Source: Hormiphora californensis (taxonomy: Eukaryota > Animalia > Ctenophora). Taken from it: a stretch of DNA of 25,742 nt. Location: assembly GCA_020137815.1 (NCBI GenBank), contig WFME01000023.1, positions 1 through 25,742 of the forward strand. The letters are read 5' to 3'. How positions within the stretch are numbered: position 1 is the first letter of the stretch; each line of letters opens with the position of its first letter. Below, piece by piece: positions 1,989 through 17,899 of this stretch. A program made the translations under genes and the position numbers. Under the pieces are notes generated by a model. It made no database searches and was not told the DNA's origin. It was given only the letters and a program-made list of their open reading frames with translations.

Positions 1989-2792
1989 GTAATTCTGACG
2001 TTATTGTGACAGCGGCACACATGTTTATTAGGCACGGCCCCCTTACAGCACTATAATGTTTCAAGCCCTCTATTCACATTTTATTCACTCACCTCTCGCC
2101 CCCATCTAGGTCATTCTAAACGGGGAACACGCATAAAGATAAACAAATTGCTGATAACGACCACCAAAAATTGAATTTATAAACGTACCACTAGAAGCTC
2201 CTCCCTGCTTGTTGAATACCTTTTGTCACACAAACAAAACGAGTAGAAAGCATTCCACAAATTGCTAAAAGGGAGGGGTAAACATTGAAACAAGGTAATG
2301 GAATTAGTAAACTATTTGATTGGGATATATCATATAACCTATAATATTGGAATGAAGATCATTGGATCAAAAAGCATAGCTAATTGACTAATAATAGTTT
2401 GTAAGGTGAGCAAGTGAAGTGTCTAGACATGTTGTCAATAATGGATTCGATAATTACCATGATTACATGATTGTCAATAGTTGATCTAACAATGGATTAT
2501 GAGACACTGCAAGTTCATATATATTGCAATTAAACTCAGTTAATATTTAACCCGGTCATGAATTTTAGGCAACGATTATAGTATGCAAATGGGTTGGTGA
2601 TGCAGTCACCCCTCCACTAACAGCCGCGTGACAAACGAAGCCCGCTTTAATAGGCCAATAGGGGATGGTATCAGCAAGCAAATTGGGAGGCCGAGGGGTT
2701 CTATGAGGAACTTGATTACGAAGTCACTCATTTGTAAAGCTTGCACGGAGGGGTAATTTCATTACCAAATAAGGAACTGACATTTGTGCTAA

Positions 2793-3305
2793 AAACTTCA
2801 TAAACTTCATAAACTTCATAAATAACTTCAATGAAAAACACAAGGTGTCAGTGTCCTTTAACACATCCCCCTCTCGGCTCTCACTTCCAGCACCCAATCC
2901 AGGATTGAATTAGTGTTCTGAGTAGGATACCCAGTCACGGGCGGACAGTCCGGGAACTGGTCGAGCCATCGTCCCAGCAGAATCTTGAACTGATCCAGGT
3001 CATCTGCTGTGTTAACCTTCTTAGGCAATGTATTCCATAGCCTCGCAGCTTTAACAGCGAAGGAGTCGAAGAACTTAGTTTTTACTGTCCCTCTGGCACC
3101 GCTGAATAGAGATGGTACTTCAGCTTTAACTCCTGTCCTATCATTCATGTAGAATCGTGTGTTGGTACTGTTGGGTGCAACTTCGTTATACATTTTCCAC
3201 ATGTGAATGATGGTGTATCTCTCTCTTCTTCGTTGCAGAGACATAAGGTTCAGCTTTTTCAGGCGGTCCCAATAGCTGTACTGCTTCATATTATCGACCC
3301 GACGT
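2793..3305 (-). mobile_element. 5'-truncated CR1/L2-group LINE: C-terminal part of ORF2 plus 3' tail
   Basis: ORF 2858-3337 has LINE post-RT motifs (LMSLQRRRERY, SFAVKAARLWNTLP). The 3' end is a tandem 9-mer, (AAACTTCAT)3 on the + strand. Confidence 0.85.
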
Positions 3306-3566
3306 GTAAAACAATTAAAAGTTACACCCAATACCATATCTCAGCTGTTTATCAAGAGACTTGTCTCATGAGGAGTTTGGAGAAACTAATTTGTGCGTAG
3401 TGGGCAGTGGCTTTATGAATAATAATAATAATAATAAAAATGACAGTTTATATCCCGCACTGACACAGTTTGTATACAGACAACTCGTTTTCCTTAATTT
3501 GAAAGGGACTGCAGTAGACTGCCTGCTCCTAGCACGGTTCTCTGATAACGGTGAGTTAGTGGGGAA

Positions 3567-4523
3567 CTATCCCACTTGGATAAGATTATTACGGATGAAG
3601 TAGCAGCCGTCAGGATCTTCTGATCGTATCCGCTTCAAAGTGGACCTTAGAGCTTTTTGCTCTTTCAGTTCAGAGGGCGTAAGATCCGGAGAGAGATAAA
3701 CAGCCGAAAACTGTTTGGAGTCTTTGAGGTTTCGTGCCTTTCTGAGGAGTGCGAGGAGAGTCGCTCTCTTCTCCAGGGATACTAAGAGCGGTCTAGGGCG
3801 CTTCTCATTTCTTTCGCCGATGCGTTTCATCGTAGTCACTTTCGGTTTCTCATTTAATTCCTCAAAAAGTTCGTCTAAAGTAGTTTTAGCTACTCTATCG
3901 GTTGTTTCTGGGAGACCAAACACAACCATGTTCTTCTCTCTTCCGGGCTGTTGGACGGGAGTAGGATGATTCACTGGTAGTGGTTTTCCCACTTTGGGGG
4001 AGGTTGCAGCACAATTCTGTGCTAGCACAGTAGAGTAGGCTTTCACCTTCTGCACCGATGCTGTCACTGTACTGAGTTGTTGCTTCTGGTGGTTGATAAC
4101 CGTTTGCTGAAGCTCGATTACGTTAACCCGATGGCGGTCAAGTTCTTCTTTACATTCACGCAGCTGTTTCTCGAGGTTTTCCACACTGATAACCGTTTCA
4201 AAATTGTTCATTGTTGCTCGGGCAAGTTTCATACTGGAGAGAAAAATACGCGAAGTAGCCTCGATTATTTCACTCGTAGTTCGGTCCTTGAGACAATGTC
4301 TAAAGTACGAACCCCAGTGCTTGCTAGGCGAAGCTAAGCTGTCGTTGGTTAACATTGAATCGGGTGCAGCTTGAATCGATCTATAACATTGAGTAAACTC
4401 ATCTGGTTTGATGCTCGTCGTGTTGTCCGAATTCAACAGGTAAACTTCAGAAACAAAGTCATCCACCGTCTCTTCTAATCGTTTTATCATAGGGTTATCG
4501 CCCTCGTACTTCGCTTCCGACAT
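3567..4523 (-). CDS. LINE ORF1-like protein (coiled coil + RRM + CTD; L1/Transposase_22-like), 318 aa from first ATG
   Basis: Coiled coil LEKQLRECKEEL...LQQTV. Motifs REKNMVVFGLPE, RIG...RPRPLLVSL and VYLSPDLT..E....KALR are typical of LINE ORF1. Confidence 0.85.
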   Translation of the reverse strand: MSEAKYEGDNPMIKRLEETVDDFVSEVYLLNSDNTTSIKPDEFTQCYRSIQAAPDSMLTNDSLASPSKHWGSYFRHCLKDRTTSEIIEATSRIFLSSMKLARATMNNFETVISVENLEKQLRECKEELDRHRVNVIELQQTVINHQKQQLSTVTASVQKVKAYSTVLAQNCAATSPKVGKPLPVNHPTPVQQPGREKNMVVFGLPETTDRVAKTTLDELFEELNEKPKVTTMKRIGERNEKRPRPLLVSLEKRATLLALLRKARNLKDSKQFSAVYLSPDLTPSELKEQKALRSTLKRIRSEDPDGCYFIRNNLIQVG

Positions 4524-4572
4524 TATCAACGTTTCGTTTTTCTGCCCTTCGGGGCTGTTACATCGGATTCAT

Positions 4573-4610
4573 CTCAATAAATAGTTTTACGTTGTAGTTG
4601 ATGAAAGTTT
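4573..4610 (-). other. Spliced-leader-like sequence at 5' end of left arm
   Basis: AAACTTTCATCAACTACAACGTAAAACTATTTATTGAG on the minus strand. It shares the CAAACTTT...CTAC...TTGAG layout of the SL at 12562. Confidence 0.7.
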
Positions 4611-4649
4611 CAAACTTTCATCAACTACAACGTAAAACTATTTATTGAG
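4607..4649 (+). other. Spliced-leader-like sequence at 5' end of right arm
   Basis: GTTTCAAACTTTCATCAACTACAACGTAAAACTATTTATTGAG. The arms are identical up to TTGAG and differ immediately after it. Confidence 0.7.
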
Positions 4650-5807
4650 CAGGAAGATGAATCCGATGTAACAGCCCCGAAGGGCAGAAAAACGAAACGT
4701 TGATAATGTCGGAAGCGAAGTACGAGGGCGATAACCCTATGATAAAACGATTAGAAGAGACGGTGGATGACTTTGTTTCTGAAGTTTACCTGTTGAATTC
4801 GGACAACACGACGAGCATCACACCAGATGAGTTTACTCAATGTTATAGATCGATTCAAGCTGCACCCGATTCAATGTTAACCAACGACAGCTTAGCTTCG
4901 CCTAGCAAGCACTGGGGTTCGTACTTTAGACATTGTCTCAAGGACCGAACTACGAGTGAAATAATCGAGGCTACCTCGCGTATTTTTCTCTCCAGTATGA
5001 AACTTGCCCGAGCAACAATGAACAATTTTGAAACGGTTATCAGTGTGGAAAACCTCGAGAAACAGCTGCGTGAATGTAAAGAAGAACTTGACCGCCATCG
5101 GGTTAACGTAATCGAGCTTCAGCAAACGGTTATCAACCACCAGAAGCAACAACTCAGTACAGTGACAGCATCGGTGCAGAAGGTGAAAGCCTACTCTACT
5201 GTGCTAGCACAGAATTGTGCTGCAACCTCCCCCAAAGTGGGAAAACCACTACCAGTGAATCATCCTACTCCCGTCCAACAGCCCGGAAGAGAGAAGAACA
5301 TGGTTGTGTTTGGTCTCCCAGAAACAACCGATAGAGTAGCTAAAACTACTTTAGACGAACTTTTTGAGGAATTAAATGAGAAACCGAAAGTGACTACGAT
5401 GAAACGCATCGGCGAAAGAAATGAGAAGCGCCCTAGACCGCTCTTAGTATCCCTGGAGAAGAGAGCGACTCTCCTCGCACTCCTCAGAAAGGCACGAAAC
5501 CTCAAAGACTCCAAACAGTTTTCGGCTGTTTATCTCTCTCCGGATCTTACGCCCACTGAACTGAAAGAGCAAAAAGCTCTAAGGTCCACTTTGAAGCGGA
5601 TACGATCAGAAGATCCTGACGGCTGCTACTTCATCCGTAATAATCTTATCCAAGTGGGATAGTTCCCCACTAACTCACCGTTATCAGAGAACCGTGCTAG
5701 GAGCAGGCAGTCTACTGCAGTCCCTTTCAAATTAAGGAAAACGAGTTGTCTGTATACAAACTGTGTCAGTGCGGGATATAAACTGTCATTTTTATTATTA
5801 TTATTAT
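4612..5807 (+). mobile_element. ORF1-only non-autonomous LINE-like retroelement, right arm of head-to-head pair
   Basis: Inverted near-identical copy of 3418-4610. It has 7 extra nt (CAGGAAG, 4650-4656), at least 3 substitutions and a (TTA)n tail. Confidence 0.8.
4706..5662 (+). CDS. LINE ORF1-like protein (coiled coil + RRM + CTD), 318 aa from first ATG
   Basis: Same protein as the minus-strand copy except K/T and S/T changes. An in-frame TGA at 4658 and the ATG at 4706 define the start. Confidence 0.85.
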   Translation: MSEAKYEGDNPMIKRLEETVDDFVSEVYLLNSDNTTSITPDEFTQCYRSIQAAPDSMLTNDSLASPSKHWGSYFRHCLKDRTTSEIIEATSRIFLSSMKLARATMNNFETVISVENLEKQLRECKEELDRHRVNVIELQQTVINHQKQQLSTVTASVQKVKAYSTVLAQNCAATSPKVGKPLPVNHPTPVQQPGREKNMVVFGLPETTDRVAKTTLDELFEELNEKPKVTTMKRIGERNEKRPRPLLVSLEKRATLLALLRKARNLKDSKQFSAVYLSPDLTPTELKEQKALRSTLKRIRSEDPDGCYFIRNNLIQVG

Positions 5808-5834
5808 AAACGGTAACTGATAGAGAATCGATAG

Positions 5835-5892
5835 CCCTAACCGATAACCCCAAACCAAACCCTAACCAGACCCTAACGGATAGCCCTAACCC
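5835..5892. repeat. Degenerate telomere-like (CCCTAA) cluster
   Basis: Four perfect CCCTAA hexamers (5835, 5860, 5871, 5884) plus CCCCAA/CCAAA variants. Confidence 0.65.
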
Positions 5893-6419
5893 GTCGCGCG
5901 CGCTAAAACTACGAATTGTTAGCAATGAAAGGCACCCAGATTTTAACGTTTTCCATTGAAAAGCGCTGCCTTATCCCGCGCTGCAACGTTTGCCAAAGGC
6001 ATGAATGATGACCCTGAGAACCAGAACAGTTCGGTGCGAAGATCAAAACGGAGGCAAGTTCCTAACTCGAAGTATGTCGATGTCCCTATGTCAAATACTC
6101 CTTCATCTAACTCCAAACCAACGCCTCCAACCTCTTCCACTCATCTTCACACGTACCTAACGATCAACCACAAGTAACAAATCCATCGGACCCCACTGCA
6201 AATGAACTATGTAAAACTTGTAACAAGGATTTTGATCCCATCACTTCGTACCCATCACTGTTCTGTAACTCTTGTAATCTATGGTATCATTACACCTGTG
6301 CCAATATGTCTGAATCAGAGTATGAAACGGCTGCTACTGACCAGGAAGCAGAGTGGTTTTGTCATAACTGCTCAGGAATTCCTGATTATATTCCAGCGGC
6401 ACCACTTACTTCTACATGG

Positions 6420-6568: not shown

Positions 6569-7912
6569 GAACCGGGTTTTTTTCCACCGAACCGAACCGA
6601 ATCGAATTTGAAAAACTTTTTTACCGAACCGAACCGAACCGAACCGAACCGAATTTCGGTAATCGAACCGAACCGAACCATACAAAACTTTTTCTGTATA
6701 AATGTTTCTCTAAAAAGTCATGGAGAGCACCAATCAAGGTATTGAGAATCATTCTCTGAAATTTTGTTAAAAAATGTTTGAAAAAATTTCAAAGTCAATT
6801 TTGTGAAAAAATTTTCAAAGTCAATTTTATCGTAAATTTTCTATGTCAATTTATGCGTACGAATCGTGTTTCGAATCGGCAATGCTATACGGGAATGGTA
6901 TTGCTAATTAGCAGGATTAAACGAACCATGACTCGTGTCTCTCTAAATTTCCTAATTAGATTTGATGGGGAATCACGTATCAGCACAATCCATCTCGGAC
7001 CCACTAATTACCAACATCACTCCCGTTTAGCATTGTCGATTAGAAACACGATTCGTATACCATAATTTACTTAAAATATTTTTCACAAAAAAAATTTCAC
7101 AAAATTTCAGGTAATGATTCTCAATACCTTGATCGATGCTCTCCATGATTTTTTAGAGAAACATTTAATTTTGTGAAAAAAACTTTGTAAAATATTTCAA
7201 AGTCAATTTCGGAAAAAAAATTCTATGTCAATTTTGCCGTACGAATCGTGTTGCGAATTGGTGATGCTATGCGGCAGTGCTCTCGCTAATTAGCAGGATT
7301 TATTGAAACATGAATCGTTTCCCCTAAACTTCCTAATTAGATTTGATGGGGGATCACGTATCAGCATAATCCATCTCGGACCCACTAATTAAGCAACATC
7401 ACTCCCGCTTAGCAATACCGATTCGAAACACGATTCGTACGCAAAAATTGACATAGAAAATTTTCCATAAAATTGACTTTGAAATATTTTCCAAACTTTT
7501 TTACAAAATTTCAGAGAATGATTCTTAACACCTTGATCGGTGCTCTCCATGAATTTTTTGAAAAAAAAAGTAATTTCTGAATTTGTTGACCCTCTCATGA
7601 GGACACGATTCGACGGGAAGTCAGGTATCAAATCAATCCATATCGAACCCGCTAACTAGCGAAATCATTTCCACATAGCACCACCGATTCGAAATAGGGT
7701 TAATACGGCGAAATTGACATTGAAATCCATACAATTTTCGTGAAATAATTGGAAAATTTTGCATGAAAAAGCCCGATTTCTGGGCATTTTTTGACCAAAA
7801 AATTCGGTGGTTCGGCCAAAATTTCCTACCGAACCGAACCGAACCGAACCGCCCAAAAAACACCGAATTTCCGAACCGAACCGAACCGAACCGAATATTC
7901 GGTCGCTTCCTG
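6566..7912. mobile_element. Non-autonomous hAT-like element with (CCGAA)n subterminal repeats; left tip missing
   Basis: Right end ...TTCGGTCGCTTCCTG is followed by the 8-bp target GGCCAAAC (7913-7920), 7 nt of which recur at 6487-6493. CCGAA arrays lie at both ends. The interior has inverted (6700-6775 vs 7095-7166 and 7500-7560) and direct (6850-7060 vs 7230-7440) blocks. Confidence 0.85.
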
Positions 7913-9564
7913 GGCCAAACCTTTTCAAGTTACCAAAAGGTGCTGCCGGACAAGCTTTTGTTTCTGAAGTAAACCGTCTAATCAATGCCTGGACTATCAA
8001 ATCTGACCTTGAACAGGTGGCAATATTGGCGGTAAACACTATCGGCGCCCTTGTTCTCCAAAAACCTGGAAAAAGGTCGACCCCCAAAGAGCACACCACC
8101 GCTCTTACTAGGAGACTTGAACTCTGGAAAAACGGACAGTTCTTAGATCTATTGTCTGAGGCCAGAGCTATACAAAAACAAATTCGATCGAGTACCCAGA
8201 GTAGCGAAAGTACTAGCAAAGGGTTTGCACGCCTAATGCTCGCCGGAAAGGTGAATAAAGCCATGCGTCTTCTCTGCACATCTCACGCCGCCCCGCTCGA
8301 AGTAACACCTGACCTAATCAAGGACCTCGAGAAGAAACACCCTCCAGATGCTCCTCTAAACAGAACCCACCTTGTGTCATCTCTACCTGCACCGGGTTTT
8401 GAGAGAGTAATCTTCGACAGCATCGACGGTCTCATGATTAAGAAAGCTGCCAAATCCACCGGTGGCGGCTGTGGTCCTAGTGGGATGTCCTCTGAGCTAT
8501 GGTCCCGTATGTTGTGCTCCAAGGCATTTACCAAAGAAGGGGACAACCTAATTTCTTGTCTGGCCCGATTAACTAGAAGACTCTGCACAGAGCTGGTGGA
8601 TCCGTCACCTTTATCATCGCTTTTGGCATGTAGGTTAGTTGGACTGAGTAAAAACCAAGGAACTGGGGTTAGACCCATCGGAATAGGGGAAGTTTTGCGG
8701 CGGATAATCGGTAGAGCGGTCACCCAACATCTCAGACAAGATATTATCCAATCAGCGGGCCCGCTACAGCTGGCAGCCGGCCAGGAGGGCGGATGTGAAG
8801 CTTCTGTACATGCTATGAACGATTATTTTTCGAGAGACAATACCGAGGGTATTCTGTGTGCTGATGCTTCTAATGCATTCAATATTTTAAATCGTAAAAC
8901 TGCTTTAGTCAATATGCGTTATTTATGTCCAGTTTTTTCCGTTTTTTTTTGATTAATTTTTATCGCTCACACACCAAACTCTTCCTATACAATGGCGAAT
9001 ATATTATGTCGTGTGAAGGTACCACCCAAGGAGACAACGCTGCTTCTCCTTTCTATTCCATCTCCCTGTATCCCCTGATGAACGACCTATCGGACTGTAC
9101 GGACTTTCAATTGTTTTACGCTGACGATGGGGCTTCAGCTGGGAAACTCCATAACATCAAGAGGTGGTGGGATGAACTCTGTGAGCGTGGTCCAGGATAT
9201 GGGTATTACCCTAACGGATCAAAGTCAGTTCTCCTGGTGAAGGAGCAGTATGCCCGCGAAGCTAGAGATCTTTTTGCGGGCACAGGAGTAGTTATCACGA
9301 CAGAAGGAGTCAGGTATCTGGGATCACCTATCGGAACTGACGAATTTAAGAACAACTTCGTATCCGAAAAGGTGGAGGATTGGGTGAACCAAGTACGAAC
9401 ACTGTCTCAAATAGCTGCAACCGAACCACAGTGTGCCTACAGCGGGTATACCTTCGGTCTGTCCAAGAAATGGCTTTTTCTGATGCGGACAACAGAGGGG
9501 ATTGAAGAACAGTTTGCACCTCTTGAGAACATCATCAAGTCATCTTTCATTCCAGCTCTTATGG

Positions 9565-9648
9565 TTGGTGATGACATCCCCTATTATCTTCGCCGGCTTC
9601 GTTGCCGCGCTTCGCGCGGCCCTAGTGGAGGGGGGACCGCGTCACCAA
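9565..9648. mobile_element. 84-bp micro-insertion with short TIRs and TSD, in frame within the RT ORF
   Basis: CTCTTATGG is duplicated at 9556-9564 and 9649-9657. The ends are TTGGTGA...TCACCAA. Removal restores FIPALMGSNTPSHLRYIAALPARDGGL. Confidence 0.8.
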
Positions 9649-10981
9649 CTCTTATGGGTTCCAACACCCCTAGCCATCTGAGGTATATTGCTGCCCTACC
9701 TGCTCGAGACGGCGGTCTAGCTATCCCCATCCCGACTACACAGGCTAGTGCTGAATTTGCGAACTCTACACAGGCTACAGAACCACTGAAACAGCTGATC
9801 CTTGAACAATCTCTTCTTATCAGTGAAAAACGTGCTGAATCATGCCTTTGGGAAGCGAAAGGAGCGAAGGGGAATGTACTAAAACTAAAACGAACTATTC
9901 AAAATGCCGAAAAACAACAGGCGTGTTCACTTCTGTCCGGTACTGACAGGCGTCTATTCGACGAAATATCGTCTAGGGGAGCTTCAAGCTGGTTAACAGC
10001 TCTGCCTTTGAAAGAGCACGGTTTCGTCCTCAACAAACAGCAATACCGGGACGCCATCTTGCTGCGATACAACCTTCCCCTCGAAGATGTGCCTGTTGCA
10101 TGTGCATGTGGCAAGGCGAACACTCTCGAGCACTGTCTTTCGTGTGCCCTCGGAGGATACGTGTATTTAAGGCACAACAATATCCGTGACCTTACAGCTA
10201 ACATCCTCGTGGAAGCCGGCTGTAAAGATGTCCGCATTGAGCCGCAGCTCCTACCCATAACTGGTGAAACATTCCAATACCGTTCTACTAACACTGCTAA
10301 CAGTGCCCGTTTGGATGTTTCTGCCCGTAATGTGTGGAGTGACTTGGACAAAGTTTACACTGACATCCGTGTATTCAACAGTCTCGCGCCAACCAACATC
10401 GGCAAGTCCCTCCAGGACACTATGAGGAGACACGAGAGGGAAAAGGTATTGAATTACAACGACAGAGTCCTTCAGGTCGAGAAGGCAACTTTCACACCTC
10501 TAGTCTTCTCAACAACTGGGGTTATGGGCCCCCAAGCGGAGCTGAGGTGTTCTACAAGAAGGTTGCTAAACTTCTATCTGACAAAACGGGACACACCTAC
10601 AACGATGCCATCCGGTACATTCGTCTCCGTCTGTCTTTCTCGCTGTTGAAGACCATTCTCATCGCCATCAGGGGGTACAGGGGCAATAAATGGACACACT
10701 TTTGTAGCAAAACATACGATTTTCATCTTATTATCTGATTTATTTATACTTAACTTATTACACCCGTAAGAGTAAATTTTATTTTTATACCTTTTCATGT
10801 AAATAATATTGTACTGACATATATTCTATTTGAACCGGTACCCCGGCCTTCGCAAAAAAAAGTTTTGACAAGTTTTGAAAAGCACTGCCTTATCCCGCGC
10901 TGCGGGGCCAGTTGAAAAGTGCTGCCTTATCCCTGCTATCGGGGGCCAGCTACGTTTGCTAATGACAAGTTTTAAAATAAA

Positions 10982-12561: not shown

Positions 12562-12601
12562 TTCAAACTTTTCAACACTACTTTAAACAAATTAATTTGA
12601 G
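12562..12601 (+). other. Ctenophore spliced-leader sequence forming the 5' end of the full-length LINE
   Basis: TTCAAACTTTTCAACACTACTTTAAACAAATTAATTTGAG matches, from memory, the major Pleurobrachia/Hormiphora SL. It lies exactly at the insertion junction and is followed by GC rather than a GT donor, so it is not an SL RNA gene. Confidence 0.85.
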
Positions 12602-12630
12602 GCTTGGCCTCTAGGTCCCGATGAAATAGA

Positions 12631-14430
12631 ATGGGCTCGAGGATGACTGGGGAGATAACGATAAGGCACGACAACCTTGAGAGGACGCTCCTCGAGATAT
12701 CTACTACAGACTCTGTGGTCGTGAGTAGGGACGACCTTGAACTCTTAGTTACCAGGGCATTAAATAAAACCCCTCCCCCAATCCCCACCCGGACAATTAA
12801 AAACGGCCTTGCAGTGCTTTATTCCAGTTTTATAGACTCTTTCTCAGCTGAGTCATTATTGGGTGAGCTGAACCTTCCTCCCCGGGTATCTAGAGGCAAT
12901 AGGTTCGCCTGGTATTCTGAGACTGGGGTTACATACGGCTGGGGCAACATCTCTCTTAGGCCGTCCCCCCTTCCCGTCCCCCTGTCAGCCCTCCTACAGC
13001 GAGTAAACAGGACCTTTAAAACAAAGTTTAATGGGTGCCTTATGATACGCTACATGAACGGTGATGAGAATCTACCCCTCCACCAGGATAGAGAGGATAT
13101 GAATGACCCGTCTTCCCCCATCTTTACAATATCTCTTGGGGCAACACGTTTCCTTGACTTTCTAGATGGCAGATACAGATCAGAGAGCAGTTTTGAGGGT
13201 AGTCTCACCCTGCACAATGGTGACGGAGTCATGTTTATGCCAGAGTGTCAAGACCAACTCTGGCATGGGTGTCCAAAGTACCCAGGTCAGTCAGGTGAGA
13301 GGGTGGCTCTGTCCTTCCGAAGAGTCAAGGTACCGGATAATCACTCACCCCTCAACTCCACGCCCGACCGATCGCACCAATCCCCGGCTCCGACTCCGCC
13401 GACTCTACCCGAAACTCCTGTACATACTTTACAGTCTGTTTCCTCAAACCAGCCTGAAATGTCCTCCCCGCCTCGCTACCTCCCAGACACAACTATTGTC
13501 TCCCACACTTCACCACTGACTGACCCACCGGTCTCTGAGGCACTACAATCCTCACCTCCATTCCCAGTACCAGTCTCTGAAATCGTACCAGTCTCTGAAA
13601 TCGCCCCGGTGGTCTCTGAAACCCCATCACCACCTCTCAACTCCAACACTCCACCGGTCTCAGGCATCGCCCCAGTGGGCTCTGGTCCCCCACCAGTGGG
13701 CTCTGGTCCACCACCTCTCAACTCCAACACTCCACCGGTCTCAGGCATCGCCCCAGTGGGCTCTGGTCCCCCACCTAACTCCTCCACCACCCCACCATCC
13801 TCTGCGACCCCACCGGCCGTCTCTTCCGGGCTTCCTGTCTTGCACCCTTCTCGAACTCCGGCTGAGCCACGCCACCCCACACGCCACCTCATCATCGGCG
13901 ACTCCATGGTCAGGGGTCTCAAGCTGAACTTCAACCAACACCAAGCTCAAGTTCATGCAATGGGGGGTGCCACTATCCCTGACTTGATTAGAGTGTGCAG
14001 TTCTTGGACTCGAGATTTGGACATTGATTCCATCAGTATACTAGTGGGCACCAATGACATATCTTCTCCTCATGGCATCTTAGATATATGTCATATGTAT
14101 TTGGGTCTCATTGATTTACTTAGTTACCGTTTTCCGCGTGCATCAATAAACTGTCTAAGCGTTCTACCGAGACTGGACCGTCCTGAGTTAGCCCCCCGTA
14201 TTATCAGATTTAACCAAACAATGAGGGGTGTCATTGATGACTATTTCGGGAGTAATGGTGAAATGTGTGTTGGCTGGCTTGACTGCTTTGATGATTTCTT
14301 GGAGCACTGTGGGTGCTGTGTTAATCGCTCATTGTTTGGACGAGGTATGCTCCACCCCAGTGCTCTTGGTAAGAGGCATTTAGTCAATATTTTTAAGTAT
14401 CTCTTGAGTCCGTATAATAGAGCCAGCTAG
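12631..14430 (+). CDS. LINE ORF1: AlkB-family 2OG-Fe(II) dioxygenase + Pro/Ser/Thr-rich linker + SGNH/GDSL esterase (599 aa)
   Basis: AlkB motifs: FNGCLMIRY, HQD (13081), ISLGATR, LHNGD, WHG (13264), RVALSFR. SGNH blocks: IIGDS (13897), GGAT, VGTND, LHP. Confidence 0.88.
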   Translation: MGSRMTGEITIRHDNLERTLLEISTTDSVVVSRDDLELLVTRALNKTPPPIPTRTIKNGLAVLYSSFIDSFSAESLLGELNLPPRVSRGNRFAWYSETGVTYGWGNISLRPSPLPVPLSALLQRVNRTFKTKFNGCLMIRYMNGDENLPLHQDREDMNDPSSPIFTISLGATRFLDFLDGRYRSESSFEGSLTLHNGDGVMFMPECQDQLWHGCPKYPGQSGERVALSFRRVKVPDNHSPLNSTPDRSHQSPAPTPPTLPETPVHTLQSVSSNQPEMSSPPRYLPDTTIVSHTSPLTDPPVSEALQSSPPFPVPVSEIVPVSEIAPVVSETPSPPLNSNTPPVSGIAPVGSGPPPVGSGPPPLNSNTPPVSGIAPVGSGPPPNSSTTPPSSATPPAVSSGLPVLHPSRTPAEPRHPTRHLIIGDSMVRGLKLNFNQHQAQVHAMGGATIPDLIRVCSSWTRDLDIDSISILVGTNDISSPHGILDICHMYLGLIDLLSYRFPRASINCLSVLPRLDRPELAPRIIRFNQTMRGVIDDYFGSNGEMCVGWLDCFDDFLEHCGCCVNRSLFGRGMLHPSALGKRHLVNIFKYLLSPYNRAS

Positions 14431-14521
14431 TTCTTAATCCTCATATATAGTTCAATAGGGAGTCTAGTGAAATCTCCCCAGTCATACCAACAAATTTAGT
14501 TAAGCTTACTTAAAATCGACA

Positions 14522-17500
14522 ATGATCGATTTACAACTCTATAGATTCAGAGTCGGATGCTTCCAATCTATCAAAGTACACTCTCTCTCGAAGAAGCACC
14601 GATCTCAACCATTTCCTCACTCTATTGAGGAAACGAGCAGCCGCACAGATGATCCACAACCACAACCCCCACAAAACACTCGTTCATGTCTAAAAACTAT
14701 AATCTTTCTAACAGCACTGTCTCTCTGTATCCTATTAAACTCTCTGGTTGTTTACCACCTACAGTCGCATTCAATCTCTGCTTCATCCTCCCCGTCATTA
14801 AATCTGTCCTCCCAAATACCAAGTACGCTCTTCCCTAAATACCTATTAATTACATACATTGCCTCTATCTATCCTAAAAATACATTAGTCAACAACCGTG
14901 GTCTCTATTTTATTGCTGGTCTGGCTCTCCTTCTCCTCGTTCAATGTAACCCAGGTATTAAAAACCCTGGCCCCGATAGAATTAAAATAGTATATTGTAA
15001 TGCACAGGGCCTCATACATATGAATAGCATTGGTGGCGACTGCCCTATTTTCCAAACTAAAAAACTCCTTGATCTCCAGGCATACTTGTACACACATGAA
15101 CCTGACATAGTTATAGTTAATGAAACCTGGCTCAACTCCTATGTAGGCAATAATGAAATTGTATCTGACTCTCTCTACACCATATTTAGAAAAGATAGAA
15201 GTGATATCGACAAAAACAAGTATGGTAAAAAAGGGGGCGGTGGAGTAATGATATTATGTAAAAACCATAGTGATATACAGTACTCTGCTATTATGGAGCA
15301 AACTGACCTACCAATAGTTAGTATTCTAGTTAAGCCTAAGAAAGGACCTAAGTTATGCATCTCGACCTATTACAGATACGACTACTCCGACTGTGAATCC
15401 AACAGTCAAGCTGAAAAGTATTATAAAGTTCTCTCGAAGCGATATAATTCCCTTACAATAATAGGCGACCTCAATCTTAGCTCTATAAAAAACTGGGATT
15501 TGCCTTCATCCAATGTTGGGAGACACTCTAGTTTCCTTGAAATCGTAAGTAACCTTGGTATGGTATCCCTGATAAACTCTCCTACGCATCGTTCAGGAAA
15601 TATCCTAGACCTCATTCTAACAAATAGACCTAGCATATATAATCAAGTTAAAGTTGAACAGGATCTATTAGTTAAATCTGATCATAGCACAATTAAATGT
15701 ACCATCAATTTAGGAGTCTCCATGAAAAATACTGCCAAGTTTAGAAAATTTGCATATAAGAAAGCAAACTGGGATCGGATTAACCAAGATCTGAACTCAT
15801 GTAATTGGAATGCTCTTTTTGTAGGCCTTAATGCTCGAGAATGTGTATCCTGTCTCAAATCAAAACTAGACATTATCCTAAAAAGGTACGTTCCTATGGT
15901 CACTGTTAAACCCTCCTCTCGTCCACCCTGGTTCGATGATGACCTAAAAGCTCTCCGAAAATCTGTAGAAAGAGCCCGCAAGCTTCATCTTAAGCACCCT
16001 GACGATATCACCTTAAACGACGAATACGTATCCCTGGCTGACAATTACAAACTCTCTGTAGAAGACAAAAGAGCTAGTTACTATACAGACGAGGAAATGA
16101 ACGACAATAATACTATAACTAAAAAGTTCTACAAGTATCTTAAATCTTTAGTAGGGAGCACTAGAATTCCCGATTCTGTTAGTGACAATAACAACTCTTC
16201 CTGTAGAACTTCTGAAAAATGTAACATGTTCAACAACTTCTTCTGTGCTCAATTTTCTGATATTAGTAGTTACAATACAGTAATCGATCCTAACAGGAAC
16301 CACGTAAATGACTGTAATAATCTTCTATTTAGAGAGGAGGATGTTCAAAAAATCCTCAAGGACATAAACCCCTCCAAAGCAACTGGTCCTGACAATATAG
16401 ACGGTATTGTTCTTAAAAAATGTTCTTCAGTCCTAGCTCGCCCTCTTGCATACATCTATAATCTCTCATACCATTCCAGTTATTTGCCATCAGAATGGAA
16501 AGAGGCAAATGTAGTGCCAGTCCACAAGAAAGGGGACAAGTCTCTAGTTAAAAATTATCGGCCTATATCTCTAACCTGCCTAGTAATGAAGGTATTTGAA
16601 AGACTCATTAGGGACAAGCTCTTCCTTATTTGCCAAGATAAAATTTCTCCTCATCAACATGGCTTCGTACCTAATAAATCATGCTGTACCCAGATGATTG
16701 AATTCACTGACAGCCTCGCCTACAATATAAATAACCATCTTCAGACTGATATCGTATATTTTGATTTTGCTAAGGCCTTTGATAGTGTTAATCATGATGT
16801 AATTATAGATAAGCTCCGAGATCATTACAATATTAATGGGAAAATGTTAAGTTTCATTATAGAATATCTTAGGGATAGAAAACAGCGGGTAGTTATAGAT
16901 AGTATATCCTCTGAATGGGCACCAGTACATTCTGGGGTGCCTCAAGGATCCATTTTAGGACCACTTCTTTTTGTCTTATTTATTAATGATATCACTAGTG
17001 TAATCAATCAGGGTACCAATAGTAGGCTATATGCTGATGATCTCAAAATATGGAAAAGTGTACACTCTCCCTCAGATAGCCTACAACCTGATATCGACAA
17101 CCTTCACAAATGGTCTATAGAAAACCGCATCTCCTTCCACCCAGCTAAATGTAAATTAATAAGGCTTAATCTAAATAGACGTGAAATAGCTCATTCTTAC
17201 ACTCTTGCAGGGGAATTAATTGTTTCAGTTTCCTCTGAGAAAGACCTCGGCGTTCTTATTAGTAACCGTTTGAGTTATGAGGAGCACAGGAATTCTATTC
17301 TTGCTTCCCAGAGGCAAAAGTTAGGGCTATTAAAGAGGCACAGTAAATTAGCTAGGACACCACCTGAACGGAAGACCCTATACTTGTCTCTTGTGCGGTC
17401 CTTACTAGAACATTGCTCACAAATCTGGAGACCAACTAGTACAGCTGGGATTGAAAAGTTAGAAAAACTCCAGAAGCGAGCGATAAAATGGATACTAGAT

Positions 17501-17899
17501 GAAGAAAATTCTAGCTACTCTGAGGTAGAATATTTTTCCAAGCTTGCCAACCTCAACATACCTCCTATTCGTAATAAATTCGAGCTTAATGATTTAATGT
17601 TTCTGCACAAAATAATATATGGTACCTCCCCAATCGATCTCCCTCCTTATCTCTCGTTCTTTACCCCGTCTCAGATAGTAATAAACACTAGGGCCCAATC
17701 CAATATGGATTCACTCCACCTGATGACGTCCGAGGTTCCTAGAGTTAACATATTTGAAAATTCCTTCTTCTACCGTGCCCACAAGCTCTGGAACCTTCTT
17801 CCGCTTTCCCTGAGAGCTACTTCTGATCCCATAATTTTCTCTTCTCAATTAAAAAGACATCTTTGGGATAGTTCTGGGACTGATCAGGGTGTCACTTAG
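14522..17899 (+). CDS. LINE ORF2: hydrophobic leader + APE endonuclease + reverse transcriptase (1125 aa)
   Basis: APE: NETWL, GDLN, LDL, SDH. RT: YRPISL, QHGF, DFAKAFDSV, GVPQGSILGPLLF, YADD, KDLGV. Confidence 0.96.
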   Translation: MIDLQLYRFRVGCFQSIKVHSLSKKHRSQPFPHSIEETSSRTDDPQPQPPQNTRSCLKTIIFLTALSLCILLNSLVVYHLQSHSISASSSPSLNLSSQIPSTLFPKYLLITYIASIYPKNTLVNNRGLYFIAGLALLLLVQCNPGIKNPGPDRIKIVYCNAQGLIHMNSIGGDCPIFQTKKLLDLQAYLYTHEPDIVIVNETWLNSYVGNNEIVSDSLYTIFRKDRSDIDKNKYGKKGGGGVMILCKNHSDIQYSAIMEQTDLPIVSILVKPKKGPKLCISTYYRYDYSDCESNSQAEKYYKVLSKRYNSLTIIGDLNLSSIKNWDLPSSNVGRHSSFLEIVSNLGMVSLINSPTHRSGNILDLILTNRPSIYNQVKVEQDLLVKSDHSTIKCTINLGVSMKNTAKFRKFAYKKANWDRINQDLNSCNWNALFVGLNARECVSCLKSKLDIILKRYVPMVTVKPSSRPPWFDDDLKALRKSVERARKLHLKHPDDITLNDEYVSLADNYKLSVEDKRASYYTDEEMNDNNTITKKFYKYLKSLVGSTRIPDSVSDNNNSSCRTSEKCNMFNNFFCAQFSDISSYNTVIDPNRNHVNDCNNLLFREEDVQKILKDINPSKATGPDNIDGIVLKKCSSVLARPLAYIYNLSYHSSYLPSEWKEANVVPVHKKGDKSLVKNYRPISLTCLVMKVFERLIRDKLFLICQDKISPHQHGFVPNKSCCTQMIEFTDSLAYNINNHLQTDIVYFDFAKAFDSVNHDVIIDKLRDHYNINGKMLSFIIEYLRDRKQRVVIDSISSEWAPVHSGVPQGSILGPLLFVLFINDITSVINQGTNSRLYADDLKIWKSVHSPSDSLQPDIDNLHKWSIENRISFHPAKCKLIRLNLNRREIAHSYTLAGELIVSVSSEKDLGVLISNRLSYEEHRNSILASQRQKLGLLKRHSKLARTPPERKTLYLSLVRSLLEHCSQIWRPTSTAGIEKLEKLQKRAIKWILDEENSSYSEVEYFSKLANLNIPPIRNKFELNDLMFLHKIIYGTSPIDLPPYLSFFTPSQIVINTRAQSNMDSLHLMTSEVPRVNIFENSFFYRAHKLWNLLPLSLRATSDPIIFSSQLKRHLWDSSGTDQGVT

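Follow-up and report, generated by a model that had tools for sequence, protein, structure and literature searches.

Inverted joints between retrotransposon copies are known from human L1. The L1 'bridges' of human tumours consist of two synchronous inverted insertions, each with its own tail, that are joined at their 5' ends and whose flanks need not be contiguous (bioRxiv 10.1101/2024.08.27.596794). L1 twin priming likewise involves priming by both target DNA 3' ends, joining of the complementary DNAs (cDNAs) by microhomology and an inverted junction, but it draws on one RNA with internal priming and leaves non-overlapping segments with one tail. DNA copies that keep relict spliced leaders (SLs) are known among dinoflagellate retrogenes (PMC5585692, PMC6050394), and trans-spliced transcripts of transposable elements are known in Hydra (PMC12220107). 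Here we describe a locus of the ctenophore Hormiphora californensis at which two leader-capped copies of one retroposon stand head to head as a 2.4-kb palindrome. The retroposon is of the long interspersed nuclear element (LINE) type and carries only the first LINE open reading frame (ORF1). The window analyzed is a whole unplaced 25.7-kb contig (GCA_020137815.1, contig WFME01000023.1, positions 1 to 25,742 of the forward strand).

The palindrome is like the tumour double L1 insertions in that two inverted elements with their own tails are joined at their 5' ends, appear to come from different RNAs and lie between unrelated flanks. It differs in that both tumour copies are 5'-truncated with arbitrary joints, whereas the present pair is full length on both sides and meets at one fixed point dictated by the leader's palindromic end; in addition, this is an ORF1-only retroposon in a germline ctenophore genome. 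L1 twin priming was considered as an origin of the palindrome and ruled out by the two full-length overlapping arms, the two tails and the lineage-specific variants in each arm, in agreement with the original prediction made for this DNA from its letters alone. As in the dinoflagellate retrogenes, the leader is retained in DNA copies, proving retroposition of mature RNA and repeated rounds of splicing. The dinoflagellate copies are of protist host genes and head-to-head dimers are not described among them, whereas here the copies are animal LINE-type elements whose insertion appears to be shaped by the palindromic 5' end of the leader. The element is also similar to HAL1-type ORF1-only LINE derivatives in its length of ~1.2 kb, its ORF1p-like protein as the only product, its LINE-type tail, its target-site duplications and its 5' truncation, but its 5' end comes from host trans-splicing and not from an internal promoter region. 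No description of a full-length head-to-head dimer with its joint fixed by the palindromic terminus of a spliced leader was found in the literature searched. Leader-bearing retrocopies, trans-spliced transposable elements and inverted joints were known, and such a full-length leader-joined dimer in a ctenophore germline genome is new.

Structure of the palindrome and its retroposon arms

A repeat-finding program showed that the inverted repeat is real, with arms of 1153 nucleotides (nt) at 3422-4574 and 4655-5807; a repeat of this kind cannot be due to chance. Aligned outward from the central base C4611, the palindrome extends over 1189 nt to the left (minus strand) and 1196 nt to the right (plus strand) of the centre GAAAGTTT-C-AAACTTTC. 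In this alignment the arms differ by exactly three substitutions (4408/4821, 4254/4975 and 3674/5555) and by a single indel, the 7-nt piece CAGGAAG at 4650-4656 on the plus strand, which is present in the right arm only. The left arm (3420-4610, minus strand) and the right arm (4612-5807, plus strand) are full-length copies of the same retroposon and end outward in (TTA)6 at 3420-3437, read on the minus strand, and in (TTA)5 at 5792-5806. Similarity between the arms ends at these tails, and the sequences beyond them are unrelated. The original prediction had described two arms with their own outward tails and the CAGGAAG difference accurately, and its minimum of three substitutions proved to be the full number.

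Each arm begins with a 43-nt leader, SL-A. In the right arm the leader (4607-4649, plus strand) is followed by CAGGAAG, which ends in AG and is read as the probable product of an upstream trans-splice acceptor, then by an upstream ORF of 5 codons (4657-4671, plus strand) and by the main ORF (4706-5662, plus strand). In the left arm the leader (4573-4615, minus strand) abuts ATGAATCC directly with no CAGGAAG in between, and the main ORF runs from 4523 down to 3567 on the minus strand. Position 5 of the left-arm leader is G and not C because this position is the centre base that the two leaders share.

The arm is a dispersed repeat with at least 42 matching copies in the genome, most of them full length from the first base and the remainder 5'-truncated, starting at positions 113-399. 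At least 37 family copies are headed by a leader, which is either SL-A or a second leader, SL-B. The copies end in (TTA)n and have target-site duplications where these are readable, such as TTAATCA at L009 and TTATTGT at L010. The only long ORF in the arm encodes 318 amino acids, and no reverse transcriptase is encoded. The 318-amino-acid protein matched no Pfam family, and searches of PDB sequences and of a protein atlas returned ctenophore hypothetical proteins only; homologues with 26-47% identity sit behind the leader in several other families. An AlphaFold model of the protein (pLDDT 68, moderate confidence) has a long coiled coil and, after it, an alpha/beta domain; the structures that it matches best are the human L1 ORF1p trimer (2ykp, 2ykq and 2yko, E 2e-5 to 1e-4, with 2ykp at 2e-5) and the RRM of that protein. 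The protein is accordingly modeled as a coiled coil, an RRM and a C-terminal domain, an arrangement resembling L1 ORF1p. With its single long ORF and these structural matches to L1 ORF1p, the arm is a non-autonomous, ORF1-only retroposon of LINE type. With regard to an autonomous partner sharing its 3' end, the neighbouring LINE in the window does not have that 3' end.

A small hairpin, GCCC-N3-5-GGGCAG, is conserved 15-30 nt past the leader join in several ORF1-type families that are otherwise diverged. It lies at 4672-4690 in the window and is also found behind the heads L029, L034, L036, L042, L045 and L050.

Spliced leaders and the source RNAs of the two arms

A 28-mer of SL-A taken from the arm head occurs at 179 genomic sites, compared to 0 sites for the reversed control. 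The bodies behind these heads are many and unrelated, and ORF1 types bearing PHD and CCHC fingers are encoded by several of them. In unitigs from the organism's own runs, SL-A is followed by GTAAGCTGATTATCC with a GTAAG donor site, and one such locus is present in the assembly; an SL RNA gene lies at C13:2741215. SL-B is 42 nt long, occurs in 5'-shortened form at 12562-12601 in the window, and is identical to the published H. californensis leader save for two extra 5' letters (GA) printed in the paper (PMC8527503). The published leader was found on 56% of Iso-Seq reads and in 718 genomic copies, in an assembly of 110 Mb with 44 scaffolds, 31 of them unplaced and shorter than 50 kb, and a mean read length of 2.7 kb (PMC8527503). 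Family copies that are only 1-3 nt apart in the body carry different leaders, and when the copies are ordered by their shared variants, the leader changes from one type to the other several times. This exchange of leaders on near-identical bodies means that the leader was added anew to transcripts and not simply inherited. Together these sequence comparisons indicate that the 5' end of the arm is the host's spliced leader.

GTTTC is the start of five independent full-length heads, each preceded by different, unrelated DNA (L006, L012, L015, L018 and L041). Most other leader heads are short by 1-7 nt, and about one fifth of heads are complete. Since heads start at GTTTC, the two 43-nt leaders of the palindrome overlap by 9 nt, GTTTCAAAC, at 4607-4615, a segment that belongs to neither strand in particular and is centred on C4611. 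This near-palindromic 5' terminus of the leader equals its own reverse complement except for the middle base, and the C at the centre agrees with the leader of the right arm and not with that of the left arm. In front of many SL-A heads stand 1-23 bases by which the mirror image is prolonged. At 12 of 25 SL-A heads (for example L006, L034 and L049) these are just AA, which extends the palindrome to 13 nt, and gene-like SL-A unitigs have GC instead of AA before GTTTC. This would mean either that part of the SL-A RNA starts 2 nt further upstream, or that the palindromic end is commonly lengthened by short templated extension. Seven SL-B heads have the same upstream letters, TTCAAAAA (C1:4554475, C2:7432239, C3:787804, C3:5360518, C7:6141304, C9:5245808 and C12:156533), and may be SL-B RNA genes or one repeat family.

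The young copies of the family form a star around a consensus, to which each arm can be compared. The left arm differs from the consensus only by A at 4408, a variant common to L002, and has no private change; the right arm has C at 4975, common to L004, and one private change at 5555, and the two arms are thus equally young. L002 still has AGGAAG at its join and therefore does not descend from the left arm, which in turn means that the left arm's 4408 variant predates the palindrome locus. The variants shared with L002 and L004, the difference at the join and the tails of 6 versus 5 repeats show that the arms descend from different source copies and support their origin from two RNAs.

The 7-nt difference between the arms falls exactly at the join between leader and body and ends in AG. 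Across the 37 heads of the family genome-wide, the join reads CAGGAAG in 32, GAAG in three and AGGAAG in one, and the piece is missing altogether in one, the left arm. The three GAAG copies have a join that is 3 nt shorter, after CAG. Two other element families contain pairs that differ at the join by TTTCAG (6 nt) and by a 13-nt piece, both ending in AG. Removal of an AG-ending piece, as expected of alternative trans-splice acceptors, accounts for 4 of 5 junction variants, the exception being the single-C difference in L002. The pyrimidine-rich 3' end of the leader, followed by GAG, CAG and AAG, would provide three close acceptors once a copy is re-transcribed.

These results agree with two proposals of the original prediction, that two different RNAs were copied and that the AG-ending piece reflects alternative acceptors, which would also account for the three joins shortened by 3 nt and the 6-nt and 13-nt pieces of the other families. 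Its expectation that both junction forms would recur in other copies held in part: variant joins were found elsewhere (GAAG three times and AGGAAG once), but the exact 7-nt-shorter form is unique to the left arm. An environmental sequence, L061 (JGI contig Ga0123365_1315991), begins inside SL-B and continues with CAGGAAG and then with a relative (~85%) of the ORF1-only element, showing that the CAGGAAG join is kept in a diverged relative.

Recurrence of the centre, flanking repeats and neighbouring elements

Searching the genome for the centre pattern RAAAGTTTSAAACTTTY returned 46 sites, compared to 0 for the reversed control. Eight centres join SL-A to SL-A, five of them with two complete leaders, and at least 14 join SL-B to SL-B (examined to 12 nt on each side). 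At L037 the centre lies between two copies, ~150 nt each, of another element, a short one headed by SL-A, and the centre at L054 consists of a 23-nt inverted stub only. The L037 palindrome (L037:1393-1715, C1:3717001-3717323) is a 323-nt unit of 146 + 176 nt that is found with the same borders at no fewer than 9 loci, with 76-100% identity. Its fixed borders mean that it was amplified as a unit and that these centres are not independent events. By our count at least three palindrome origins appear to be independent, those of the ORF1-only family, the second (L037) element and SL-B. The idea that the arms were joined through the self-complementary 5' end of the leader is borne out by the 9-nt overlap and by the return of the same centre elsewhere, and other leader-centred palindromes do exist in the genome as anticipated, although many of the 46 sites are non-independent.

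The body of the short SL-A-headed element also occurs without a leader, as direct-repeat pairs 1.3-4.7 kb apart and mostly at ~3.3 kb. At L043/L044 (C1:9076953 and 9079299) two copies of this element face each other 2.3 kb apart; their identical upstream flanks and CAATTCGAA target-site duplication identify the pair as an inverted segmental duplication. A hammerhead was looked for in this second palindromic element, and Rfam gave sub-threshold hairpin look-alikes only.

The right flank of the palindrome (5807-5955, plus strand) consists of the last 148 nt, at the 3' end, of 'T', a dispersed repeat of ~273 nt that contains degenerate CCCTAA motifs, and is cut exactly at the tail. Nine other copies of this repeat continue upstream with ...GAGTAAACT before AAACGG, and the remainder of the right-flank copy is nowhere in the window. 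The left flank (2792-3421, minus strand) consists of a 3' fragment of another LINE, with the C-terminus of its ORF2 and a 9-nt tandem tail near 2795-2830, and then a repeat piece at 3307-3421. The left flank as a whole (2760-3421) has no allelic copy in the assembly, where only pieces of its repeats were found. The flanks are therefore different, unrelated repeats, and because they are unrelated the two primed ends need not come from a single break; these sequences would be better explained by a deletion or by a bridge that links two breaks. In this respect the original prediction, which had the two RNAs copied from the two ends of one break, is unsupported: the repeats on the two sides do not correspond, no target-site duplication is seen, and the search for an empty allele found none in the assembly.

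The ~273-nt repeat, which is telomere-like in its degenerate CCCTAA motifs, is also found at L004, L009, L015, L025, L030, L031, L041, L052 and L057. Its copies are frequently broken up by other insertions, of which several lie close to one common internal position, and three copies of the ORF1-only family are situated in or beside the repeat.

Elsewhere in the window, a full-length LINE at 12562-17899 (plus strand) is headed by the SL-B that is 5'-shortened by 2 nt. Its ORF1 (12631-14430) contains an AlkB-like 2OG-Fe(II) oxygenase domain and a GDSL/SGNH esterase, and its ORF2 (14522-17899) contains an APE endonuclease and a reverse transcriptase. Two overlapping long ORFs of 381 and 574 amino acids at 7807-10649 (plus strand) have no Pfam match, and an Rfam scan of the window found no family at gathering score.

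Origin of the palindrome and its significance

We propose that two target-primed cDNAs, made from two trans-spliced RNAs, annealed by their 3' ends to form the head-to-head dimer, and we put the probability of this origin at roughly 0.58. Each arm would be the DNA copy of a mature trans-spliced RNA composed of leader, short upstream ORF, L1-ORF1p-like ORF and (TTA)n tail, and the source copies of the two RNAs would differ slightly, with the splice acceptors used in the two RNAs lying 7 nt from each other. Target-primed reverse transcription would start from two DNA 3' ends that face each other, and the two events would be simultaneous. Both cDNAs would reach the very 5' end of the leader, so that each ends in the complement of GTTTCAAAC, and the 9-nt overlap would be the annealing site, at which the two 3' ends form 4+4 base pairs around one G:G mismatch. 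Each end would then be extended on the other cDNA, either by the reverse transcriptase of the element's partner or by a host repair polymerase, and the mismatch would be fixed as C on the plus strand. The expected outcome is a head-to-head dimer with two outward tails and a single central base that matches one arm only.

Several results weigh against this proposal. The 7-nt-shorter join of the left arm is a singleton among the 37 genomic heads, and no RNA with this join was seen; a metagenome scan found the short join 0 times and the long join once, in the SL-B-headed ~85% relative L061. Much of the recurrence of the centre is non-independent, since the 323-nt unit alone accounts for at least 9 loci. 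No target-site duplication is readable, the assembly holds no empty site and the flanks are unrelated. No read spans the palindrome, as the unitigs of the organism's runs are shorter than 200 nt (about 80-160 nt), too short to bridge the junctions between flank and tail or to resolve the arms. Where the leader truly begins is known only to within 2 nt, given the GA printed before GTTTC in PMC8527503 and the AA before 12 of 25 SL-A heads. Finally, mixed SL-A/SL-B centres number 0 among the 46 sites, which is unexpected if arms are drawn randomly from the RNA pool. We had considered this absence as strong evidence against independent arms and withdrew the argument as weak because many centres are copies of one amplified unit. 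The absence may simply reflect amplification of a few founder palindromes, and we treat it as unexplained and not as evidence.

The same final structure would be expected from two sequential insertions, in which the cDNA end of a later, inverted copy met the leader head of an old copy through the 9-nt microhomology and the intervening target was deleted. Arms from different lineages are equally expected in this case, and an insertion accompanied by loss of target DNA would agree with the unrelated flanks and the truncated T repeat. Leader heads abound (179 SL-A sites; 718 leader copies in PMC8527503), and family copies do land in the same repeats (L003, L015). However, this route needs an inverted, 5'-complete head within reach when only about one fifth of heads are complete, together with a sizeable deletion, and it needs that combination in at least three pairings of element and leader. 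Both arms are moreover equally young, with 0 and 1 private changes, and we consider sequential insertion unlikely. An origin from one RNA, whether by a single cDNA snapping back on its palindromic 3' end or by an RNA primed twice, with the substitutions and an AG-microhomology deletion arising later, appears less probable still. The inverted stubs of 1-23 nt before many leader heads, such as L054, do suggest snap-back or templated extension, all centres join leaders of like type, and the 7-nt-shorter join is unique. Nevertheless, two of the three arm differences are already carried by other copies, and a random deletion would have had about 3 chances in 1189 of falling exactly at the join between leader and body. 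Snap-back would also copy tail length and flank, while the tails have 6 versus 5 repeats and the flanks are unrelated, and a 1-nt loop cannot form within one molecule.

The small size of this unplaced 25.7-kb contig, in an assembly whose reads averaged 2.7 kb (PMC8527503), raises the question of an artefact, whether from a long read that is chimeric or palindromic or from a wrong join. The unitigs give no bridging support, and the bin over the left junction (3344-3440) is almost uncovered, which proves nothing. Random chimeras, however, would not coincide with the starting base of both leaders and a 9-nt overlap between them. Reads with a missed adapter have arms that are identical and continue to the read end, whereas these arms carry distinct genuine variants. 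Identical centres are also present on chromosome-scale contigs, making an artefact very improbable. Short inverted repeats can seed fold-back inversions, and the palindrome centre is itself a short inverted repeat, so that a replication template switch or break repair at this site could in principle have duplicated a single insertion at the DNA level. Such a duplication should carry on past the tail into the flank. Each arm instead ends precisely with its own tail, the flanks that follow are not alike, and the arm differences match other copies; we regard this explanation as highly improbable.

Under the proposed joining of two target-primed cDNAs, the palindrome naturally records what takes place at the 5' end in target-primed reverse transcription, a step of LINE integration that is understood less well than any other. 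As every element receives one and the same self-complementary terminus from the host leader, the join sits at one exact, readable position, and the arms preserve the marks of two RNAs in their acceptor choice and source-copy variants. The locus would provide a clean germline counterpart to the 'synchronous double insertion' bridges recently inferred in human tumours. A more speculative extension, which we would sooner doubt than adopt, is that the leader's first 9-13 bases, being nearly palindromic, provide completed cDNAs with a dimerisation and priming site of their own, such that leader-capped retroelements regularly yield inverted stubs and head-to-head dimers; some of these, for example the 323-nt unit at its nine or more loci, might then spread as fold-back-type repeats or feed hairpin RNA against their own family. 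The findings also favour reading most of the hundreds of 'leader loci' that have been reported in this genome as retrocopy heads. More broadly, they suggest that an RNA-processing signal of the host can influence what DNA a mobile element leaves behind, up to and including perfect inverted repeats of kilobase length that arise de novo, are fragile and can form hairpin RNA.

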